Assembly: GCA_950097015.1 (NCBI GenBank)
Contig: CATNEN010000029.1
Location: 7,502,001-7,566,000, forward strand
Source: Macrostomum hystrix
Lineage: Eukaryota > Animalia > Platyhelminthes
Length of the DNA: 64,000 bases
Direction of reading: 5' to 3'
Part shown: positions 11,369 to 59,439 of the stretch, one piece after another
Position numbering within the stretch: position 1 is the stretch's first letter
Layout: each line of letters starts with the position of its first letter
The notes under the pieces: model-generated
Told to the model about the DNA's origin: nothing
What the model saw: the letters and a program-made list of their open reading frames with translations, nothing else
Databases searched by the model: none
Made by a program: the position numbers and the translations under genes

Positions 11369-13084
11369 TTTGGGTGCAGTCCTTCGGAGTTTCGGACTAA
11401 AACAGTTTCATTTTGTTGGATTTTTTCAACAACACGCGAGAGAGACTAAAATATGTTTTTAAACAACCTTTACTTCGCATATAGGCATCTTGTTTTGCAG
11501 GAAACTAAAAATAAGTAAAATTTTACAGACAAGAGGACGCACTTACTTACATACAAGATTTCCCAGATGCTACCACACTTCTAAAGGCTTGAATGTCTAT
11601 AAATCTGGAAATTGAAAATAAACTAGAGTGGCATTTCGTACTACACTCCTTCTAACTCTGATCAGAAGTCGTCAGAACTGCTACTGCTGCTGGACATAGA
11701 CGCGAAGTCTTCATTATCTTCAAGATCGGACAGTAACGACGAGGCAACGGTACCTGGCTCCCGCACCAACGCGACCGCCGCGAGATTTCTTAGCTGGCCG
11801 ACCGTCAGCCAGTAAGCAGACGAAGCACCTGGCGATCCTCTTCGCCGAGATTCAGGTCAGCAAAAGGGTCGTCCGAATGCTGCTGACGTCGGCGACGCTT
11901 AGCCAAGGCGCTGCCTTCGCCCATCGACGACGAACCGGCGCCAATCGAAGCAACAACGCCAGAGACGCCGACCCCACCGCTGCTAGCCGCAACTCGACGG
12001 CGCTTTGCCGACGGACGGCCAATGGCACTGGGGCCGCCGACAGCGCGTGGCATAGTAGCCGACGCCGGTGCTGGCGCCACTCGGCCGCGAAAAGAAGCGA
12101 GATAATCGCGACGCTCCACCTCGCTCTTGTCAGTGCTTTTATGACGCCAGCAGATTGGATAGAGCCGCACCACGGCCTGGTCAATGCTGCGCGTGCAAGG
12201 CCCGGTGAAAACAACGCTGCCAGTGGCGAACACTTTGGCCAATACACGGATGTCTTTGAAGCGCAGGTTGAGGGCAGGATGAATCTCAGGCTCGTACTCG
12301 GCCATTTGCGGCAATTCGTCAGCAATTCCGGGCAGTTTAACTAGGAATGGCAGCTCGCAGGTGGCGTGCACGTTGGTGATGCGAAAATTTGAAAACTTGC
12401 AGGGGAAGCCGAGTTTTTGAATGCGTCTAGCGATGCGCCGGGCGCCGCGACGAGATTCTAACTCACTGGCACTGCCGGCTACAAAGATTTTGCCACTGGA
12501 ACGAATACTCGCAACAGCAGTAGGGCTTCCGTAGGCGCATTGTGACCATGTAGTTCTCCGGCCTGTACTCAACATTCAAACCAGTCTAAGGCAATCTTCT
12601 TCAGGTTCAGGTGGCACTGTGTTGAGAAACAACTGACAACATTGTGCAGAGTAACTGTGATGTCTCGAGTGATGGAGCTGCCACCGCTGCCTCCATTGCT
12701 ATTGTCGCCAGCTGAAGTCGCTCCTTCTTGATTTTCTTTATGCGGCTGCTGCTGATTTTGTGCTTGCGGAGGCAGTCCTGCACTCCTGTCGTATAAGGTT
12801 GATGACATGTATAGCTGCAAAAATAATTTCATTTATAAATTATTTACTGACTGTGCATAAAGCATGCTGTACCCAAAGCAACCCTAATGAGGTTATTCAT
12901 TATCTGCCGGTTTTTCTATTTTCTTGCAACAAAGAAAACTTTTAATACACTGCTATCTATTTCGTAAATATTCTTATAGTACTTTTTACATTAAATTTTT
13001 TTTGTATTGCCATCATTGCAAAATTCTATGCACAATTGTGACTTCTGTGGCCTGTGAATATGCGAGAGGATGTTGAAGGTATTA
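11369..13084 (-). CDS. Unidentified multi-exon gene (partial) whose intron contains TRF2
   Basis: Putative exons 13084-12990, ~12915-12848, 11604-11551, 11504-11474, 11445-11369 with GT-AG sites join as NTFNILSHIHRPQKSQLCIEFCNDGNTKKFN-..QIMNNLIRVALGTACFMHSQ-FIDIQAFRSVVASGKSCI-FLQNKMPICE-SLSRVVEKIQQNETVLVRNSEGLHP. This needs one A removed from a homopolymer and a 28-nt intron. No family recognised. Confidence 0.4.
11662..12808 (-). CDS. TBPL1: TBP-like factor TRF2/TLF, intronless CDS with +1 frameshifts
   Basis: ITVTLHNVVSCFSTQCHLNLKKIAL-TGLNVEY..RLRKP-TAVASIRSSGKIFVAG..ARRIARRIQKLGF..YEPEIHPA..VFATGSVVFTGP matches TBPL1/TRF2 (CHLNL, YEPExHPA). Insertions at ~12586 and ~12524. An acidic tail (DLEDNEDFASMSSSSSSSDDF*) probably extends the CDS from the 11805 stop to 11662 via two more +1 indels. 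Confidence 0.9.
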
Positions 13085-27004: not shown

Positions 27005-40008
<13,004 letters not shown>

Positions 40009-42540: not shown

Positions 42541-42977
42541 TAAAGTAGGCAGTGGGTATTTGCTGCTTTTTTAAAAAGGGAACTTCAGAACCTGCTTCGG
42601 AGTTTGGCAGTGTACACTCCCTCTGTTTGATGCGGTGGGGGGTAGTATGACACACCAGCTACCAATGCGACTTTAGCCGCTAGCTAGAGAGAGGTGGGTT
42701 TGTGTTAGAGAGACTGAAAGGAACGGGACATAAGTACACTGGCGTACACTGTGTGTTCAATGGTATCAGGCTTCTTCCACCAGATTTCATTTTGGCCGGG
42801 GGTAGAGAGGGAACCACAGAAAGTCTTAACCTGAAATGCACTCATGGCCGCCCAGACCAGCTAACTCAGAGTGATATTTCTTTCTCTCATTGAATAAAAA
42901 AGGCAGCGCAAACAGAAGAAAGTGGTGTGAAGTATCGCTAAGACTGGTGCAGGATAAATGAGGTACAGTAAAAGGCC

Positions 42978-45900
42978 ATGAACCAGCCCGACGGTGCGAC
43001 TGCTGACCCGGTTGAGAATTTCCCATGGCTCGAGTTTCATCGGTCATTGAGTCGAGCCGGATTAACCAAAGCGCGAGCCGCTTTTCAAAGCAGCATCGGG
43101 CACCTGGTGGAGCATGTGGCTGCGGCGGTAGTCGAGATCAGCGGCGAGTCCTATTATGACTGGATGATGACAGGGAGCTTTGTCGAAGGCTGGGGCAACA
43201 ACCTGTTCCGATTGGATGGTGTAACAGGACTCGACTCCGACATTGATTGGAGCCAGGTGGTTAAGCACAAGGTCTACCACCTGGGCGAGACCTGTAACTC
43301 CGTTGTGGACTGCATCAATAGAAAGAATTATAAACTGGACGATGGACACATCGACGTGAAAAACTCCAGTAAGTATTCGGTATTGAGTCTATATGCTCGT
43401 GACGCGAAGCTGACGCGAAGCTGACGCGAAACTGATGCGAAGCTGACGCGAAGCTGACGCGAAGCTGACGCGAAGCTGACGCGAAGCTGACGCGAAGCTG
43501 ACGCGAAGCTGACGCGAAGCTAACACTTAATTTTACCAGGTCAGCAGCCGGCATTCGACACAGCCTCGACACGGACTCCGCCCGGACACGGACGAGTGCC
43601 ACGCCTATCCCTGCTGCTCCTATCCGGCCACCGTGCTCGACAATGACGGCAGTGAAAATCGGTGGTGAAGAAGTGCACAAAGAATTTTTGGAAATACTGA
43701 AGACCCAGTTTGACAATGAGAACCCAGTGGAGGATGTACACTTTGTGCGAGCCAGCGTACCCGGCAAAGTCAACCAGCTGCGGCTGAGCTGCACCAGGCA
43801 GGAGCGCTTCATCATGAGCCAGTTGAGCACAGTTCAGGGTCAGCTGTTTACAGTGCTCAAGTACCTGTTCAAGACTGAAGAAGAGTGAGTCGAATTTCTT
43901 TTGAGTGCATTTTTGAGTAGCACATCCGTTTTTAAAACGCCCTAAAGGGTTGCAAGTTGCAGCGCCCTGTCAACTGAGTAAATGAGAATGGGCAATTGTT
44001 AAGAGTCCCTAGTTTTGCTCAGGTTTAGCTATACTTTTTCAATCCAGGGTTCGCGACCAGGACAACAAGACTTCCAAGAAGAAGATCATAGAGAGTGTGA
44101 AGTCCTACCACGCCAAGACGCTGCTGATGACGCTGCTGAGGGATGCCGACAGTTGGCCGAGCTCGGAGGAGCCAGACGAAGCTGCTTCAGCCCAGCAGCT
44201 GAAACTGCTGCTGTATCGAGCGCTCTGTTTCCTATTGAAGTCGGTGGCGGATAACTTGAGGCCTTTCGAGGGTCTTCAGCCAGTTAACGGTGGGAATTTG
44301 TTCTTGACTCTTAGATGACTAACTCCTAGTTTCAGTATTCAAGTAAATAAATTCTTGTCCTTTGATAATTTCAGATGCACAGCAACAGCAGCAGCAGCCG
44401 CAGGAGCAGCAATCGCCACCGCCGCCGCCAAGTCGGCAGGTCTCGAGCGCGTCAAGCAGTTCCGAAGTCAGCACAAAGAAGGTGCCGCGAGTATTGGAGC
44501 ACGCGCTACTCAAAGACTCCGGACTCTACCTGAAGCCAAAGAAACCAAAGCAGGACGGTCGGGCCGCTGGCTACAGCCTGTTTGGTGTCTTCCGCTTGTC
44601 GTCCAGCTCAGGGCAGGGCAGGAAAGGCAAGAAGGTCACGGAGGAGGAAATGCATATTAACGCCCTGGAAGACTTGAAGAAGGATCTCTTGAGCCTGATT
44701 GGCAAGCGAGCGGTTCTGCAGGCTTTGATGGCCGAGAAGAATGCAACAGGTGATCCACAAGATTTGGATGAGCAGCAGCTCAGGGATATTGTGCTGGAGT
44801 TTCGCAGGCGAACAGAATCGCAGGATGCCAGCAGCTGCACTAGAGGAGAACTTAACTAGAAATGAACTTCTGGATCGAATTAACATCACCGAGGCGCAGA
44901 ACAGTCCTAAGCTTTTGAAGGTTCTCGAAACCTACATGAATCAAATAGACCAAATGTTGGATAATCGCAAGCAGACGCTCAGTTATCAGGAGGAAGAAAT
45001 TGGTCCGCAGTCGAAATTTCTATTCATTCCGTTGGCCATGCTGCCCAGAATCACTCTGGACACTCTGCTAGAGGAGCGGAGACGAAGAAAGAGGCTCGAA
45101 GCCTCCATGAAAGCTGATAGGGAAGACAGAAATAAGTCTGAGGCTACAGGAGCGAGTACAACAGGTCCAGCGGCGGATTGTACAACAGGTCCCGCGGCGG
45201 ATGGTACAACAGGTCCCGCGGCAGATGGTACAGCAGGTCCCGCGGCAGATGGTACAGCAGGTCCCGCGACGGATGGTACAACAGGTCCCGCGACGGATGG
45301 TACAACAGGTCCCGCGGCAGATGGTACAACAGGTCCCGCGGCAGATGGTACAGCAGGTCCCGCGACGGATGGTACAGCAGGTCCCGCGACGGATGGTACA
45401 ACAGGTCCCGCGGCAGATGGTACAACAGGTCCCGCGGCAGATGGTACAGCAGGTCCCGCGACGGATGGTACAACAGGTCCCGCGGCAGATGGTACAACAG
45501 GTCCCGCGGCAGATGGTACAGCAGGTCCCGCGACGGATGGTACAGCAGGTCCCGCGACGGATGGTACAACAGTTCCCGCGTCGGATGGTACAACAGGTCC
45601 CGCGACGGATGGTACAGCAGGTCCCGCGGCGGATTGTACAACAGAATCTGCGGCCGAAGCTTCAATTCCTGCAGCCGGAGAGATACTTAAAGAGGCCTAC
45701 ATCAAAGTGTGGATCGTGCTTAGGAGTCTGAGCGACACCGCCGAGCAAGCTAGTGATGAAGAAGCACAAGAGGAACTGATTGAAGCCAAGAATTGGATCA
45801 AGAAGCAGCCATGTCTCAACACAGCTTGGCACTGCTTAGAAATCATGGAGAAATTAAAGAATAAAGAGAACCTCGCGGAAGTTCTCAAGCAGATTGATGT

Positions 45901-46357
45901 TACCAATCTTAGGCCGACCAGGTGGGTTGGCCCGGCTGACCAATTTGATTTCTTGGAGCTGCTGAACAAGCATGACTGTGTCCTGGCGTTTCACTACTTC
46001 ATTCGACCCAAGACTAAGATTAGCTTCAACTACCTGAGTAATCTGCAGTCGGTCTGGCAAAAACGTAGTGCTCAAGTTTTGATAGAAAGCGATAAAAGCG
46101 GCCAAGTCAAACGCGAGTACGTTGAGGCAGTTCGCAAGGACTGGCTCACTCACCTGGTCGTTAATGACAAGCAGGACGACAAGAACAGTCGTCAGCCCAG
46201 TCTGACTGTCAACTTTGACGGACTGATTGACAGCTTCAAGCGGTTCGTGGAGCAGCAGGAGAACAGGGACACGAATGAACAGTTCTGGCTGCACATGAAA
46301 AACTGCTTATTCGACCCGAGGATCAGCAAGCGGTTGGAGGAGCAGAGAGAAAAGTGA
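42978..46357 (+). CDS. Mab-21/cGAS-like nucleotidyltransferase (cGLR candidate), ~985 aa after removing three +1 insertions
   Basis: Exons 42978-43368, 43540-43884, 44048-44289 and 44375-46357 are phase-consistent after correction (2958 nt). Motifs: TGSFVEG..DSDID, DTDECHAYPCCSYP, VHFV, LRLSCTRQERFIMSQLSTVQGQLFTVLKYLFK, KSYHAKTLL, and a distal HYFI. Confidence 0.85.
43398..43521. repeat. 11-bp tandem repeat GACGCGAAGCT (~11 units) filling cGLR intron 1
   Basis: Directly visible. Confidence 0.95.
45150..45645 (+). repeat. 24-bp coding tandem repeat (T-T/A-GPA-A/T-DG)n, ~20 units, inside cGLR exon 4
   Basis: In frame within the 44741-46357 ORF and flanked by non-repetitive coding sequence. 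Confidence 0.9.
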
Positions 46358-46439
46358 TTATTTCCTGACCACAAAATCTCATTTTGGGCTGTTGGACTTC
46401 TACAATGACATTAAGCTAATAATTTTGTCCTCATTCCGT

Positions 46440-47040
46440 GTCTCTATCTATCTATCTATTTGCAGGGGGGCCCGGGGCACTTGTCGCACAAGCGACGGAG
46501 CGGCACGCCCCCAGACCGGCGAACTAGGCGCTTTTGCGCCCATCGCGCCGCCTCCCCTGAGCAGGCACCACACACAGCAGCACAGACCAGCCGGGGAGGG
46601 CAGGAGGCACCCAGAATAGGCAGCAGTGTCCCCCACCCCAGCCCCACAAGCACATAGCAGACCAAGCCGGGGCGGAAGGCTGATAAGAAATCAGTCCTCA
46701 GGGGGGGGCCGGGTGATGAGTGTACACTTATCCAATCGCGCTGACGGAAGTCCAGAAAGCGCGCGGCGGTGTACACCCGCCCTCCAGCCACCCCCCGCAA
46801 GGTCTCACGCCCCAGCGCCAACGCACACAACTCACACAACGCAGAACAGGCACACAGAAAGGTAGGAGCGAAGCTATTATTTCAAGCTTTGATTGCACGA
46901 AATATGGTGCACCTCCGCCGGTCGCTACTGTCCAAACCCCCCAACAAGTCCCGAAATTAATCGTGACTTAAAGGGTGAATCGAACTAGCGTCCTTTGGAG
47001 TGCGAGGCAGCGACGTTAGCCGCTGACCCACTCGCCCCCT
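46440..47040 (-). mobile_element. Third tRNA-headed SINE (~600 bp) with (TAGA)n tail
   Basis: Reverse strand begins GGGCGAGTGGGTCAGCGGCTAAC..TAGTTCGATTCACCC (A and B boxes), has a GC-rich body, and ends aatagatagatagatag. Confidence 0.6.
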
Positions 47041-48300: not shown

Positions 48301-49895
48301 TACAATGAACCCCCAGTTGACAATGATCCCACAGTTGATGATGATCCCCTAGTTGATGATGATCCCTCAGTTGACAATGATCCCCCAGTTGACAATGAAC
48401 CCCTAGTTGACAATGAACGCCCAGTTGACAATGATCCCCCAGTTGACAATGATCCCCCAGTTGACAATGATCCCCCAATTGACAATGATCCCCCAGTTGA
48501 CAATGAACCCCTAGTTGACAATGAACGCCCAGTTGACAATGATCCCCCAATTGACAATGATCCCCCAGTTGACAATGATCCCCCAGTTGACAATGATCCC
48601 CCCAGTTGACAATGATCCCCCAATTGACAATGATCCCCCAGTTGACAATCATCCCACAGTTGACAATGATCCCCCAGTTGACAAAGATCCCCCAGTTCAC
48701 AATGATCCCCCAGTTGATGATGATCCCCCAGTTGATGATGATCCCCCAGTTGAAAATGATCCCCCAGTTGACAATGATCCCCCAGTTGACAATGATCCCC
48801 CAGTTGACAATGATCCCCCAGTTCACAATGATCCCCCAGTTGATGATGACTCCCCATTGATGATGATCCCCAGTTAACAATGTTCCTCCAGTTGACAATG
48901 TTCCCCCAGTTGACAATGATCCCCCAGTTGATGATGATCCCCCAGTTGACAATGATCCCCCAGTTGACAATGATCCCCCAGTTGACAATGATCCCGCCCG
49001 TTGACAATGATCCCACAGTTGACAATGAACCCCCAGTTGACAATGATCCCCCAGTTGATGATGATCCCCCAGTTGACAATGATCCCCCAGTTGACAATGA
49101 ACCCCCAGTTGACAACGATCCCCCAGTTGACAATGATCCCCCAGTTGACAATGATCCCCCAGTTGACAATGATCCCGCCCGTTGACAATGATCCCACAGT
49201 TGACATTGAACACCCCAGTTGACAATGATTCCCCAGTTGATGATGATCCCCCAGTTGACAATGATCCCCCAGTTGACAATAATTCCCCAGTTTACAATGA
49301 TCCCGCAGTGGATGATGATCCTCCAGTTGACAATGATCCCCCAGTTGACAATGATCCCCCAGTTCACAATGATCCCCCAGTTGATGATGATTCCCCTAGT
49401 TGATAATGATCCCCCAGTTGACAATGATCCCCCAGTTGACAAAGATCCCCCAGTTGACAATGATCCCCAAGTTTAAAATGATCCCACAGTTGACAATGAT
49501 CCCCCAGTTGATGATGATCCCCCAGCTGACAATGATCCCCCAGTTGACAATGATTCACCTAGTTGATAATGATCCCCCAGTTGACAATGATCCCCCAGTC
49601 GACAATGATTCCCCAGTTGACGATGTTCCCCCAGTTGACAATGATCCCCCAGTTGATGATGATCCCCCAGTTGACAATGATCCCCCAGTTGACAATGATC
49701 CCACAGTTGACAATGATCCCCCAGTTGACAATGATTCCCCTAGTTGATAATGATCCCCCAGTTGACAATCATACCCCAGTTGCCAATGATCCCCCAGTTG
49801 ATGATGATCACCCAGTTGACAATGATCCCCCAGTTGACAATGATCCCCCATCTGATGATGACTCCCCATTGATGATGATGCCCAGTTGACAATGT
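48301..49895. repeat. 18-bp minisatellite GTTGACAATGATCCCCCA (~85 units)
   Basis: Directly visible. Confidence 0.97.
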
Positions 49896-51301: not shown

Positions 51302-53105
51302 TCAATTAATTGCGCCGGAGTCCACAAATTCTCTTCTCTGGTACTTGGCCCGCACAAACGCTTCTCGAACTGGACTCGAAGCCTCCGGACTCGGCCTGCG
51401 ACCCTGCGGTAGGCGAGCTTCCAATATAGCGTTGCCAAGGCGGTTGCCAATGATGCACAGCGGCATCGCCTGGCCAGGCGTCCAGGCGTCGAGCGTCAGA
51501 GAGCGGACGCGGCTAGCCTGGGTGCCCAGACGGCGGTGAGCTCCTGAGCAGCGGATGCAGATCAGCAGGCCGCGGCTGACGCTCGCCCAGTCTGGCGCCG
51601 GAGCGCCGCAATCAGCGCAGACATCGTTGCCGGGCAGGTTGACGGCAGCTCTCAGAAGGATCTCGGCAGCGCCGCCGGTGGCTGCTGAAACAGTTTCGGA
51701 TGGCCCAGTCGGACGGCGCAAGCTGGCTAGGATGCCGCAGCGGATGGCGGCCACCCAGACGTCGCGTTCGGCTGAGTTGGCCGCCTGGAAAAGCCGTCGG
51801 CGACCGTCCGCCGTCACTAGCTGGAAGGTGGCATCGTCAGCTTTGTCGACTTTGGCTTTGACGGCGACTGCGGCTGGCGATGAGGCCCGGACGGCAGCCT
51901 GAGCGAGGTCGACCACTTCGGCATGGTTTGCGGTATCCGTGTGAACGAAGAGTCCGTCGGCTGTGACGCGGGCAGCTCGATGTCGCGGCATGACTCGTCG
52001 AAGGGCCGCCGGTAGGCGACGGCGGGTGAGTAGAAGGCGGCCTTCGTGCTGAACGCGGGTCTGGGATCCGGCAGTCTCATTGTGACAGCGGATGGCTGGT
52101 GGCTGAGTCTGATGGTGCGGATTGAATTGAGTAGTGGATATCAGTTTGCGGCCAGGCCAGTTTGGGGATAAAATCTGTGTTTGGTTGGGGATCAGTCTGG
52201 GAATGGGATCGGTGTGGGGATGGGATCGGTGTGGGGATGCGATCAGTGTGGGGATGGGATCAGTGTGGGGATGGGATCAGTGTGGGAATGGGATCAGTGT
52301 GGGGATGGGATCAGTGTGGGGATGAGATCAGTGTGGGAATGGGATTAGTGTGGGGATGGGATTAGTGTGGGGATGGGCATCAGTGTGGGGATGGGATCAG
52401 TGTGGGGATGGGATCAGTGTGGGGATGGGATCAGTGTGGGGATGGGATTAGTGTGGGGATGGGCATCAGTGTGGGGATGGGATCAGTGAGGGGATGGGAT
52501 CAGTGTGGGGATGGGATCAGTGTGGGGGTGGCATCGGTGTGGGGATAGGGAATAGTGTGGGGATGGGATTAGTGTGGGGATGGGATCAGTGTGGGGATGG
52601 GATCAGTGTGGGGATGGGATCAGTGTGGGGATGGGATCAGTGTGGGGATGGGCATCAGTGTGGGGATGGGATCAGTGTGGGGATGGGATCAGTGTGGGGA
52701 TGGGATCGGTGTGGGGATGGGATCGGTGTGGGGATGGGATCGGTGTGGGGATGGGATCGGTGTGGGGATGGGATCGGTGTGGGGATGGGATCGGTGTGGG
52801 GATGGGATCGGTGTGGGGATGGGATCGGTGTGGGGATGGGATCGGTGTGGGGATGGGATCGGTGTGGGGATGGGATCGGTGTGGGGATAGGGAATAGTGT
52901 GGGGATAGGGAATAGTGTGGGGATAGGGAATAGTGTGGGGATAGGGATTAGTGTGGGATGGAGATCAAATGATAATCGGTATTGAGGTGCTAATGGGGCA
53001 CAGTTAATAGCGGACACTCACGCCATGATAGGTGTCTCCGGGAGCATGTAACCTGAGGCTCAGGCCCTGGGGACTTGTTGTGTTGCCAGTTGACTTGGCG
53101 GGTGT
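51302..53105 (-). CDS. PH domain + ArfGAP protein (centaurin/AGAP-like), 3' part; further 5' exons possibly up to ~55.3 kb
   Basis: Exon 52108-51302 encodes a PH domain (FQLVT..LFQAANSAERDVWVAAI) and an ArfGAP C4 zinc finger (GNDVCADCGAPAPDWASVSRGLLICIRCSGAHRRLG..SRVRSLTLD..FVRAKY). The upstream 84-nt exon 53105-53022 is in phase 0. Confidence 0.85.
52170..52960. repeat. 17-bp G-rich minisatellite GTGTGGGGATGGGATCR filling the ArfGAP intron
   Basis: Directly visible; same unit as at 47820-48045. Confidence 0.97.
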
Positions 53106-55980: not shown

Positions 55981-58147
55981 TACACAACCCGCAGAATCCG
56001 GGCCTTACTCATCCAGTCGTCTCTAGTCACATAGCAACCGGTGACAATCCGTGTTCCGGAGAAGCCACAGCGGCCGTGCAGGACTCGCCAATTGTCAATG
56101 AACAGCACGGTGCCAGGCTGCAGGTTTATCCGAATCTGTGAGTCAGGCCGGTTCAGTATGTCGCCCAGGTGTGCGTAGGCGGCCAGGTAGGTTGCGACCT
56201 CCGCCTGCGGCAGGGTGGTCAGAGTGTCAATGTCGTAGGGATTGTAACGAATCTGGTACGGGCAGTCGTTTCCCTCTGGGTCCAGTTTGATGACGCTGTC
56301 CAAGCAGCGGGTGTGATAGGCCGGTCCGCCGGGCCCGCCATCCTCCAGGTAGTGGTGATACACTGGCCTGCTCGCCAACAGTTTAAAGTGCTCGCCGCTT
56401 TCTCGGCGCAACGTCTCAGCGGCTAGAAAGCCGTCGGCCAAGCATGTCTGGCCGCCCTCTGTGGCCGGCTGAAGGACGTGGAATACCTTTAGGGAGGACA
56501 AATAGTATTATGCTTGTTATGACACTTCCAATAGAATCCCTGCACTGCCACTGAACCCTACACAATCCCTACACAGCCATTCTACTGAACCCTACACAAT
56601 ACCTACACAGCCATTCTACTGAACCCTACACAATCCCTACACAGCCATTCTACTGGACCCTACACAATCCCTGCACTGCCATTCTACCGAACCCTATACA
56701 ATCCCTGCACTGCCATTCTACTGAACACTACACAACCCTACACTGCCATTCTACCGAAACCTACACAATCCCTGCACTGCCATTCTACCGAACCCTACAC
56801 AATCCCTGCACTGCCATTCTACCGAACCCTACACAATCCCTGCACTGCCATTCTGTGTAGAAAAAATAGCTTTCAGTTACTTATTGCCACTGCGATTGCC
56901 ACTCTGGTTGTATATAAGTAATTTTCCCCTAATTAAATCCGTCGGTATTACCCTATTCAGTAGAATAATAGGGACATGGAAAGCTAATTTTTTTTTACGC
57001 ATAAAATCTCGCGGCACAAGTGTACGGATCAGAGAACTCGAGTTCCTTGGTGTGTGAGGGCAAGTCTTATGGAATTAAGTGCCTGCACAGTTAGTCTGTC
57101 TCGCTAAGAAATATATAATTAGATTTCAGTCTAGAAGAGAATAATAAGAGCCAATAAAACTTAGTCTACTTAAAATTAGCATGCTAATGACGACAAAAGT
57201 TTATGGCTCTGGCCATTATTATAAAACTAATGGCAATTAGACTGTTTTCAATCTTCGCCACAACTGCTGCTGTATAATTGTGGTGAGAATAGTGCTCAGA
57301 AATAAATACAAACCTAAATTAGCTGATATTATTTCATTAGTTCAAACATTTTGAATCTTGAGGGAGGCATTTAGTCCAGTAGTTCAAGCCTCGAGTTTCT
57401 AGCAGAGAGATCTGGAGTTCGAATCCCACTTTGCATAAAGCTCACCTGCAGTCCCGCACAGCTGTGCAAGTAGGTGTTGTCGTTGTGCACCCCGATGGCG
57501 TCGCTGCCGTATGCTGTGTCCTGGCGTTTGCCATCGGCGCTGAACGTCCACATGCGGCCGAACAAGGTGTGCATGACCGGCGCCAGAAGCTGCACGGCAG
57601 CCTCCGTTGCCGCCTCAGTCGGCTCCACCTCGGTGACGGTGGCCACTCCGGAGGACCAGAGGTTGCGCAGCACGGTGCGCAGGCCGCCCTGCGAGGACTC
57701 GACCTCAGCTAAGGGCACTGGCCGAATTGCAGACGGTCCTTCGAAGGGATGACCAGCCGAACGGTTCCAGAGGCGTCTTTCGACGCCGCCGCCGTCAGGA
57801 GACAGCAGGGCGTCTAGCTGAGAATAGGCGAACTCCGTCAGGTGGCCGTCCGGCCAGTCCAGTCGGATCCCGGATTTGTCCGGAAGCTGGCTGAGCTGCG
57901 GCTGCGACGCTGCGGCGGACAGAGCAGCAGACGGCGAGACCGAGCGCTGCCTGGTAGCTGCGTTGTGGCACTCGGGGCAGCGGCAGTTAAAACGCAGCCA
58001 CGCCGCGCTCAATCGGCGCAGCTTGCCGTTCGGATAGCGGATCTCCGTCATCGTCGACTCAGTCGCTGATGACGAGCTGGACAAACTGGTGCCCAGCTGG
58101 CCCCAGCGGCGACCAGCCAGGAGGCAGCCGAGACCTTTGCGAAGCAT
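55980..58147 (-). CDS. TMLHE: Trimethyllysine dioxygenase (carnitine biosynthesis, Fe/2OG dioxygenase), 402 aa, 2 exons
   Basis: Exons 58147-57446 and 56486-55980 in phase 0. N-terminal WLRFNCRCPEC, HxD (VHNDNTY), GGQTCLADGF, IRYNPYD, LFIDNWRVLHGR and GCYVTRDD are closer to TMLHE than to BBOX1. The N-terminus resembles a mitochondrial presequence. Confidence 0.9.
56540..56855. repeat. 34-bp minisatellite in the TMLHE intron
   Basis: CTGCCATTCTACCGAACCCTACACAATCCCTGCA, ~9 units. Confidence 0.92.
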
Positions 58148-59439
58148 TGCGCTTTGATGCTGAGCTGTGAAAATTGAGTCGATTATCAGTTGCAGCAAAT
58201 AAGCGCGCCGACTTCTAAAGCTTGACACAGAACTCTATGCTACCGGCTATTAATAGACACTCAACTGGATTCGGAAATCCAATACATGTGGGATTTCCGC
58301 AAATACCGAGTCCATTGGCTCGACCTTCTACCGTCATGCTTATTTGTACATTTATGCCTGGACAATCGAGTGCATGAAAAATTCTGAAGTGTGTTTCTAG
58401 AAAATTTAGTCTATGGCATCCGTCACAGAACGCCAATTGTTAGACGTATTTTTGTCTTTTTGAATATAAAGCTCACCTGTGAGACTAATTCTTGGTGGCT
58501 TCAGTCTCCAATTTTTGGGTCTCAGGTGCTCAGTCTGAATTCTAAAATCGCCTCAAGGGAGAGCAGAGATCTAGAAAGCACACACTTGCTTCGCAAAGGA
58601 AGCACTTGGTTATTAATTGGAGGTGTGCGGTTGAGGGGAGACAAGGAGAGAAGAGATTAATATATGCTGCGTACATGGAAGCAGGTCTGTACAATCGACA
58701 CCGGTGCAGCTTGTGCGTACTCTCTCTATGCATGAAACTCAGGGGCCAGGTATGGGTGTACAGTCCCAACAGCTTAGAAACTGTTTGGATCTACAATCTG
58801 ATAAATTGACGCAGTTTTGTGGGTACAATAAACATTAATACTCTCGGTGGACCGAGAGAAGATCAATGCTTTGAAAACTTTGCTTGCGTGACCAAACATG
58901 CGAGTAGCGCAGTGTGACATCGCAAGCCGGGTTTGGTTAGGAAAATATACGCCCTGGAATATTCTATTCGACTTTCTGTTTCATAGTTCACGATCCTTCG
59001 AAAACATTTTGATCCGAGTCTAGTCCCTAATAGCTGTAGAAGGTTTCGTGTGCGACTTTGTCTGATGTCCTAATATCATTAGTTCAACCTGACTTTCACA
59101 TTGTATAGCGTTTCAACATAGAGGATGCAGTTCTAGGCTGCACAGACAGATCGATGCTGAGATCAATCATTAGGATACAGGGAACGACCTTTGTGCGTCT
59201 TGGCTTGAACTACATGCGAGACAAAGAACGACATAGTTATCAAAAACTGAGCCAAATGCACTGCTCCTCTGATGACGATGGGCAGGCAGAGCTGCTGAAT
59301 ATCTCGTGACTGCAGTATTTTGAGACACTTTGTGTCGGATCAATAATTGAATACTAATTTAAGTCCCTGAGCTTTCCGGTAAACGTCGTAAAAATGCCAA
59401 TGTGTTCCACCCTGGTGACTCATCATGTGAACCGTATTG

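Follow-up and report, generated by a model that had tools for sequence, protein, structure and literature searches.

The window, the 64,000 nucleotides of Macrostomum DNA analyzed here, very probably carries an intact, spliced, and transcribed gene of four exons, in which the assembly has broken the reading frame by wrongly inserting a single base at each of three places and which encodes a cGAS-like receptor (cGLR) nucleotidyltransferase (NTase) domain of a Macrostomum family with a complete predicted set of metal-binding residues. When the three bases that are absent from the reads are removed, the coding sequence, from 42978 to 46357, is open throughout its 985 codons. The gene is an additional member of a family that has already been catalogued, and what is chiefly new about it is that its "frameshifts" are assembly errors. 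The evidence from reads consists of contigs of public runs, namely, X1 (DNA), X2 (RNA), and X12 (RNA, from a separate study). An earlier note on this DNA, made from the sequence alone, had placed the gene at 42978 to 44289. The start is retained, and the end moves to a stop codon at 46355 to 46357, beyond a third extra base at 44825.

The gene lies on the forward strand. The 5' untranslated part of exon 1 (42800 to 42977) is contained in contig 12 of X2, which is unbroken over 42800 to 43368. An in-frame stop at 42969 to 42971 lies shortly before the ATG at 42978, and no further coding exon is possible upstream. The coding part of exon 1 (42978 to 43368), established by the contigs, the translation, and the family alignment, provides residues 1 to 130 plus one base. 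It contains the spine helix, M64-T65-G66-S67 (43167 to 43178), D88 (43239 to 43241), and D90 (43245 to 43247), and its translated product includes MMTGSFVEGWGNNLFRLDGVTGLDSDIDW. Intron 1 (43369 to 43539; 171 nt, GTAAGT..CAG) is delimited by the joint of 43368 to 43540 in contigs of X2 and X12, and holds 11 copies of an 11-nt tandem repeat, TGACGCGAAGC, at 43400 to 43521. Exon 2 (43540 to 43884) is covered by contigs of X1, X2, and X12 and carries two bases inserted by the assembly (43562/3 and 43652); it is open after their removal and then agrees with the reading of the Macrostomum lignano protein P0001. It encodes D148 (43591 to 43593, within RPDTDE) as well as two strands, marked by VHFV and by LRLSCTRQE. 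Intron 2 (43885 to 44047; 163 nt, GTGAGT..CAG) is given by the joint of 43884 to 44048 in the X2 contig. The C-terminal helical lobe begins in exon 3 (44048 to 44289), which encodes KSYHAKTLL, matches Pfam Mab-21_C with an E value of 0.04, and aligns by profile with "sYHvKTaiF" of cGAS. Exon 4 (44375 to 46357) runs to the stop codon with an assembly-inserted base at 44825, as delineated by the contigs, the corrected translation, and a repeat search.

The most informative transcript is contig 12 of X2 (1,953 nt), which is placed on 42800 to 43368, 43540 to 43884, 44048 to 44289, and 44430 to 45174 with GT..AG joints and zero substitutions. Being spliced and free of substitutions, it therefore represents spliced RNA from the window's own haplotype. 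Intron 3 (44290 to 44374; 85 nt, GTGGGA..CAG) was located by length arithmetic in this contig and by its GT..AG ends, because the 55 letters left unplaced between the third and fourth pieces of the contig correspond exactly to 44375 to 44429. Introns 1 and 2 are thus confirmed by spliced contigs, and intron 3 is supported by this arithmetic.

The list of open reading frames had been described as showing only fragments of the gene, and indeed exon 2 of the window runs through three frames in turn, reading QQPAFDT, then RHGLRPDTDECHAYPCCSYPATVLDNDG, and then KIGGEEVHKEF...VHFV...LRLSCTRQE...LKYLFK. All the peptides from which the gene had been proposed (TGSFVEG, DSDID, LRPDTDECHAYPCCSYP, VHFV, LRLSCTRQE, LKYLFK, and KSYHAKTLL) are present, with 14 residues, not 13, between TGSFVEG and DSDID. 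The two bases in exon 2 that had been taken for spurious insertions near 43574 and 43657 are indeed spurious, and the contigs that lack them shift their positions to 43562/43563 and 43652. Every contig that covers the respective site has one base fewer than the window at 43562 (X1) or 43563 (X2 and X12), at 43652 (X1 and X2), and at 44825 (X1 and X2). A fourth extra base of the window, the intronic 43378, is revealed by the DNA contig of X1. Moreover, P0001, which is the closest database protein, reads identically across both breaks of exon 2 (QQPAFDT.RHGLRPDTDECHAYPCCSYPATVLD). Since the DNA and RNA contigs lack the extra bases, the 985-codon frame opens, and P0001 reads through, the gene is intact and transcribed, and the insertions that break its frame are consensus errors of the assembly; this evidence is that of contigs, and rare alleles lie beyond their reach.

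The frameshifts might instead be real in the assembled haplotype, as a young pseudogene allele beside an intact one. The extra bases do stand in the window, none of the four (43378, 43562/3, 43652, and 44825) lies in a homopolymer run, and rare variants are dropped from contigs. However, the extra bases are missing from each covering contig at full depth, and over the approximately 3.7 kb from 42700 to 46440 each of the four differences is a base inserted in the window, and one of these bases lies in an intron. A decaying allele ought to show substitutions too, and the X2 contig has none over its 1,953 nt, being otherwise identical to the window. The frame-breaking changes that would define a pseudogene are not seen in the organism's DNA, as the contigs of X1, X2, and X12 are without the extra bases, and neither are the frameshifts present in all alleles, a finding that the earlier note had said would speak against the gene. 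A decaying allele is therefore very unlikely.

Even less credible is a reading that needs no frameshift at all, in which the acceptor of intron 1 would lie 5 to 8 nt further downstream, with the first base of exon 2 at 43545 or 43548, and exon 2 would stay in the one open frame of the window. That frame ("mod 2") is open through all of exon 2 and is in frame with exon 3, but contigs of two studies splice 43368 to 43540, and P0001 and the paralogues fit the other frames (QQPAFDT and RPDTDECHAYPCCSYP) instead of the frame-2 peptide. Both acceptors, 43545 and 43548, are therefore rejected.

At Thr138 the DNA contig of X1 has ACG and the RNA contigs of X2 and X12 have ACA, a synonymous polymorphism that the window merges as "ACAG" (43560 to 43563). 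The assembly appears to be underpolished, with about one single-base insertion per kilobase in this region. Other "frameshifted" genes of the same assembly may likewise be artifacts and should be compared with reads before they are named pseudogenes.

The fold of the encoded protein was explored through its family, as single exon pieces gave almost no matches in Pfam or among PDB sequences and a family profile was required. The only credible hits of this profile in the PDB were cGAS (E value, 2.4e-5, in the C-lobe) and Drosophila cGLR1 (8gjy; E value, 4e-4), with weak hits to MB21D2 (7lt1) and a Mab-21 protein (7lt2). An AlphaFold2 model of residues 545 to 830 of the paralogue P0005, the core of which is 34 to 54% identical to the window exon pieces in the alignment, had a pLDDT of 85 and a pTM of 0.86. 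In this model the GS lies right after strand 1, D-I-D begins the long strand 2, and the Asp of RPAxD is inside a later strand. The top Foldseek hits of the model were all cGAS (E value of approximately 2e-8), and VIA-align gave Z scores of 16.7 with human cGAS and 16.5 with the oyster enzyme Cv-cGLR1, with 230 to 244 residues aligned; the alignment to cGAS covers residues 10 to 285 of 286. Predicted structural homology to cGLR/CD-NTase enzymes was thus found by way of the paralogue, and the cGAS/Mab-21 fold that had been suggested for the window domain is supported by profile and model, with residues ~15 to 440 as the predicted cGLR NTase domain.

The family models of Pfam were less responsive. 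Mab-21 (PF03281) had zero hits in the window pieces (E values up to 10) and in 10 relatives (E values up to 0.01). For Mab-21_C (PF20266), exon 3 reached 14.5 bits against a cutoff of 24.1 in a scan of separate pieces, which lowers the scores; of the same 10 relatives, only the paralogues P0003 (26.2) and P0019 (26.8) passed the threshold. The comparisons that the earlier note had in mind for this fold hold for cGAS, through Foldseek and the paralogue model; for the window pieces they give no match to Mab-21 and stay below the threshold of Mab-21_C.

The active-site motif by which cGLRs are recognized is h[QT]GS X8-20 [DE]h[DE]h X50-90 h[DE]h (Li et al. 2023, PMC9980059). In the protein of the window it reads M64-T65-G66-S67, 20 residues, D88-I89-D90-W91, 55 residues, and T147-D148-E149, with the first spacer at the upper limit. 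The motif calls for hydrophobic residues on either side of D148, but T and E stand there, and both positions vary among the paralogues too. G66-S67, D88, D90, and D148 align with columns conserved in the family, being kept in at least 70% of its rows and in P0001. The GS loop and the three acidic positions are present as had been claimed, and the "DTD" previously pointed out does hold the third Asp, D148. Judged by this alignment, the putative metal-binding set is complete, comprising the G66-S67 loop, the pair D88 and D90 of strand 2, and D148 from the strand next to it.

A search of the full protein library with exon 1 retrieved 57 representatives of the family, which is lineage-specific and expanded in Macrostomum, and all 10 of those whose species was looked up are from M. 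lignano. The host is thus a flatworm, the case that the earlier note had envisaged. The best is P0001 (UniRef A0A1I8J3X3), 82% identical over exon 1, which the sequence comparison suggests is probably the orthologue of the window gene. P0001 is named "Bromo domain-containing protein" in the database, although Pfam detects no domain in it, and its gene model skips ~45 residues, those with the VHFV and LRLS strands, a gap that is probably a gene-model error. Homologue searches with P0001, whole or as region 41 to 221, returned only P0001 itself, the 985-residue protein being outside the length range that they covered, and within this range no intact database copy of the window protein came to light. 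The 330 N-terminal residues of the read-supported protein match the cores of the relatives over ~260 to 300 residues, with up to 128 bits. In an alignment of 22 paralogues the motifs TGS..EGWGN, SDID, RPAxD, CH.V.A, QLRVS..F.E, QGQLF, and LK.YHAKT are family-wide, as is HFF..D..LYLK. The alignment of the exon pieces spans the whole core of the 22 paralogues, and the family profile reaches the C-lobes of cGAS and cGLR1. Homology thus extends over the NTase core as well as the C-terminal helix bundle, as Li et al. (2023) ask of a cGLR.

The earlier note had raised the prospect of an undescribed immune pathway. In Li et al. (2023, PMC9980059), the M. lignano family had already been curated as cGLRs whose active sites are complete, and five of its proteins were cloned for a biochemical screen (Table S3 entries 89 to 93: PAA86972.1, PAA45980.1, PAA57558.1, PAA93208.1, and PAA68676.1), so that the prospect is not supported. 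In that table the "Note" column is empty for these five proteins, and entry 90 matches the aligned paralogue P0046 over the compared stretch. These proteins, from the same genus, share with the window protein the colinear motifs GS..EGWGN, SD(I/V)D, RP..D, CH.V, LR(V/F)S..F.E, QGQ.F, YH(A/V)KT, and HFF..D..LY(L/F)K. Most of the M. lignano relatives have ankyrin repeats N-terminal to the cGLR domain, together with weak matches to Mab-21_C, and ankyrin-cGLR fusions are a known architecture according to Li et al. (2023). In contrast, the window gene is without ankyrin repeats, and tblastn detected no ankyrin-coding sequence in the window. The window protein also differs from the M. lignano family in a Q/P/S-rich insert that precedes the HFF-type motif (EHALL in this protein) and in a long, acidic extension with ~20 octapeptide repeats.

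The extension is encoded by exon 4, which specifies, in order, the Q/P/S-rich insert, the EHALLKDSGLYLK motif (residues 367 to 379), a charged region, the octapeptide repeats, and a C-terminal region of ~225 residues. The insert, of ~35 residues, directly precedes EHALLKDSGLYLK, which is the apparent counterpart of the HFF..D..LYLK motif of the family. A distal "HYFI", ~530 residues away, was considered as the element that completes the C-lobe and was rejected, since the family motif aligns instead, with weak support, to residues 367 to 379. The octapeptides, ~20 copies of the GPAADGTT type, arise from a 24-nt coding tandem repeat at 45156 to 45644 (20.4 copies, 92% matches); the contigs break within it (45174 to 45599), and the copy number comes from the assembly alone. 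Weak colinear matches to the C-terminal extension of the family itself occur at residues 504 to 554 and 766 to 833, with the octapeptide array between them, and the FYFHPF motif of the family aligns weakly to KFLFIPLAMLP (539 to 549). Profile-profile comparison of the extension gave an hhalign probability of only 3 to 4%.

Among proteins of known structure, vertebrate cGAS (6ct9_A, human cGAS-DNA; 4k98, mouse cGAS) shares the bilobed NTase core and the helix bundle, the paralogue model superimposing with an rmsd of 3.5 Å over 232 residues, and the GS and acidic triad of cGAS also occur in the window protein. Identity is, however, only 14 to 22%, and the core is acidic where that of cGAS is basic. 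The invertebrate cGLRs Cv-cGLR1 of Crassostrea virginica (8gjw) and Drosophila cGLR1 have the same fold at ~15% identity; their ligands and products have been demonstrated, whereas the window protein is a predicted enzyme. MAB21L1 and MB21D2 belong to the same superfamily, but their Pfam model matches neither the window protein nor the paralogues. Mab21L1/2/3 genes are without a predicted functional active site according to Li et al. (2023, PMC9980059), in contrast with the full motif of the window protein.

The chance that the window protein is catalytically active is put at about even. By the example of characterized cGLRs, it would bind two NTPs with Mg or Mn, and some cue would order the activation loop for the production of a cyclic di- or oligonucleotide messenger. 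The core is acidic, with a pI of 5.4. An acidic core is described in Li et al. (2023, PMC9980059) as typical of auto-active cGLRs and not of nucleic-acid sensors, and therefore a nucleic-acid ligand is not the obvious guess.

Less probable, though a possibility to be taken seriously, is that the fold and the motif have been kept in a protein that is not an enzyme and acts as a scaffold or regulator. Such a role has been considered for MAB21L1-type proteins. It would agree with the acidic core, with the nonhydrophobic neighbors of D148, and with the lack of a match to the Pfam Mab-21 NTase model. The screen of Li et al. (2023, PMC9980059) points the same way: it included the five paralogues, and the lineages named for its 15 active enzymes, which include insects, anemones, molluscs, hydras, and corals, do not name flatworms in the part of the paper that is accessible. 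On the other hand, the conservation of GS, D88, D90, and D148 across the family and in P0001 is what selection on catalysis would yield, and Li et al. credit the family with complete active sites in their curation, which argues in the same direction.

If the protein is an enzyme, an ankyrin-less acidic cGLR that is conserved between Macrostomum species and bears a repeat-containing extension could represent a functionally distinct flatworm branch, either auto-active or switched through the extension by a cue other than nucleic acid, and its product might feed soluble TIR-STING proteins. This proposal is speculative and rather improbable; were it true, a functioning cGLR-STING axis would be demonstrated in a flatworm for the first time. 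Being expressed, conserved between species, and free of ankyrin repeats, the gene also offers a simpler construct with which activity could be demonstrated for a flatworm cGLR.

The gene stands alone in the window, outside any immune gene cluster, and no second copy of the cGLR family was found within the 64 kb. The neighboring open reading frames are of housekeeping type, with domain hits to TBP (11808 to 12575, reverse strand), RRM_1 (34228 to 36090, forward strand), hexapeptide/eIF2B-epsilon LbH (48303 to 49460, reverse strand), ArfGap (51305 to 51991, reverse strand), and GBBH/TauD-like proteins (57374 to 58228, reverse strand). Just past the stop codon, at 46444 to 47040, lies a repeat of very high copy number, with a contig depth of ~1e5 compared to ~75 for the gene. 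This repeat had no match in Rfam, and it turns up as well in a macroalgae metagenome and in runs that carry the labels of other organisms.
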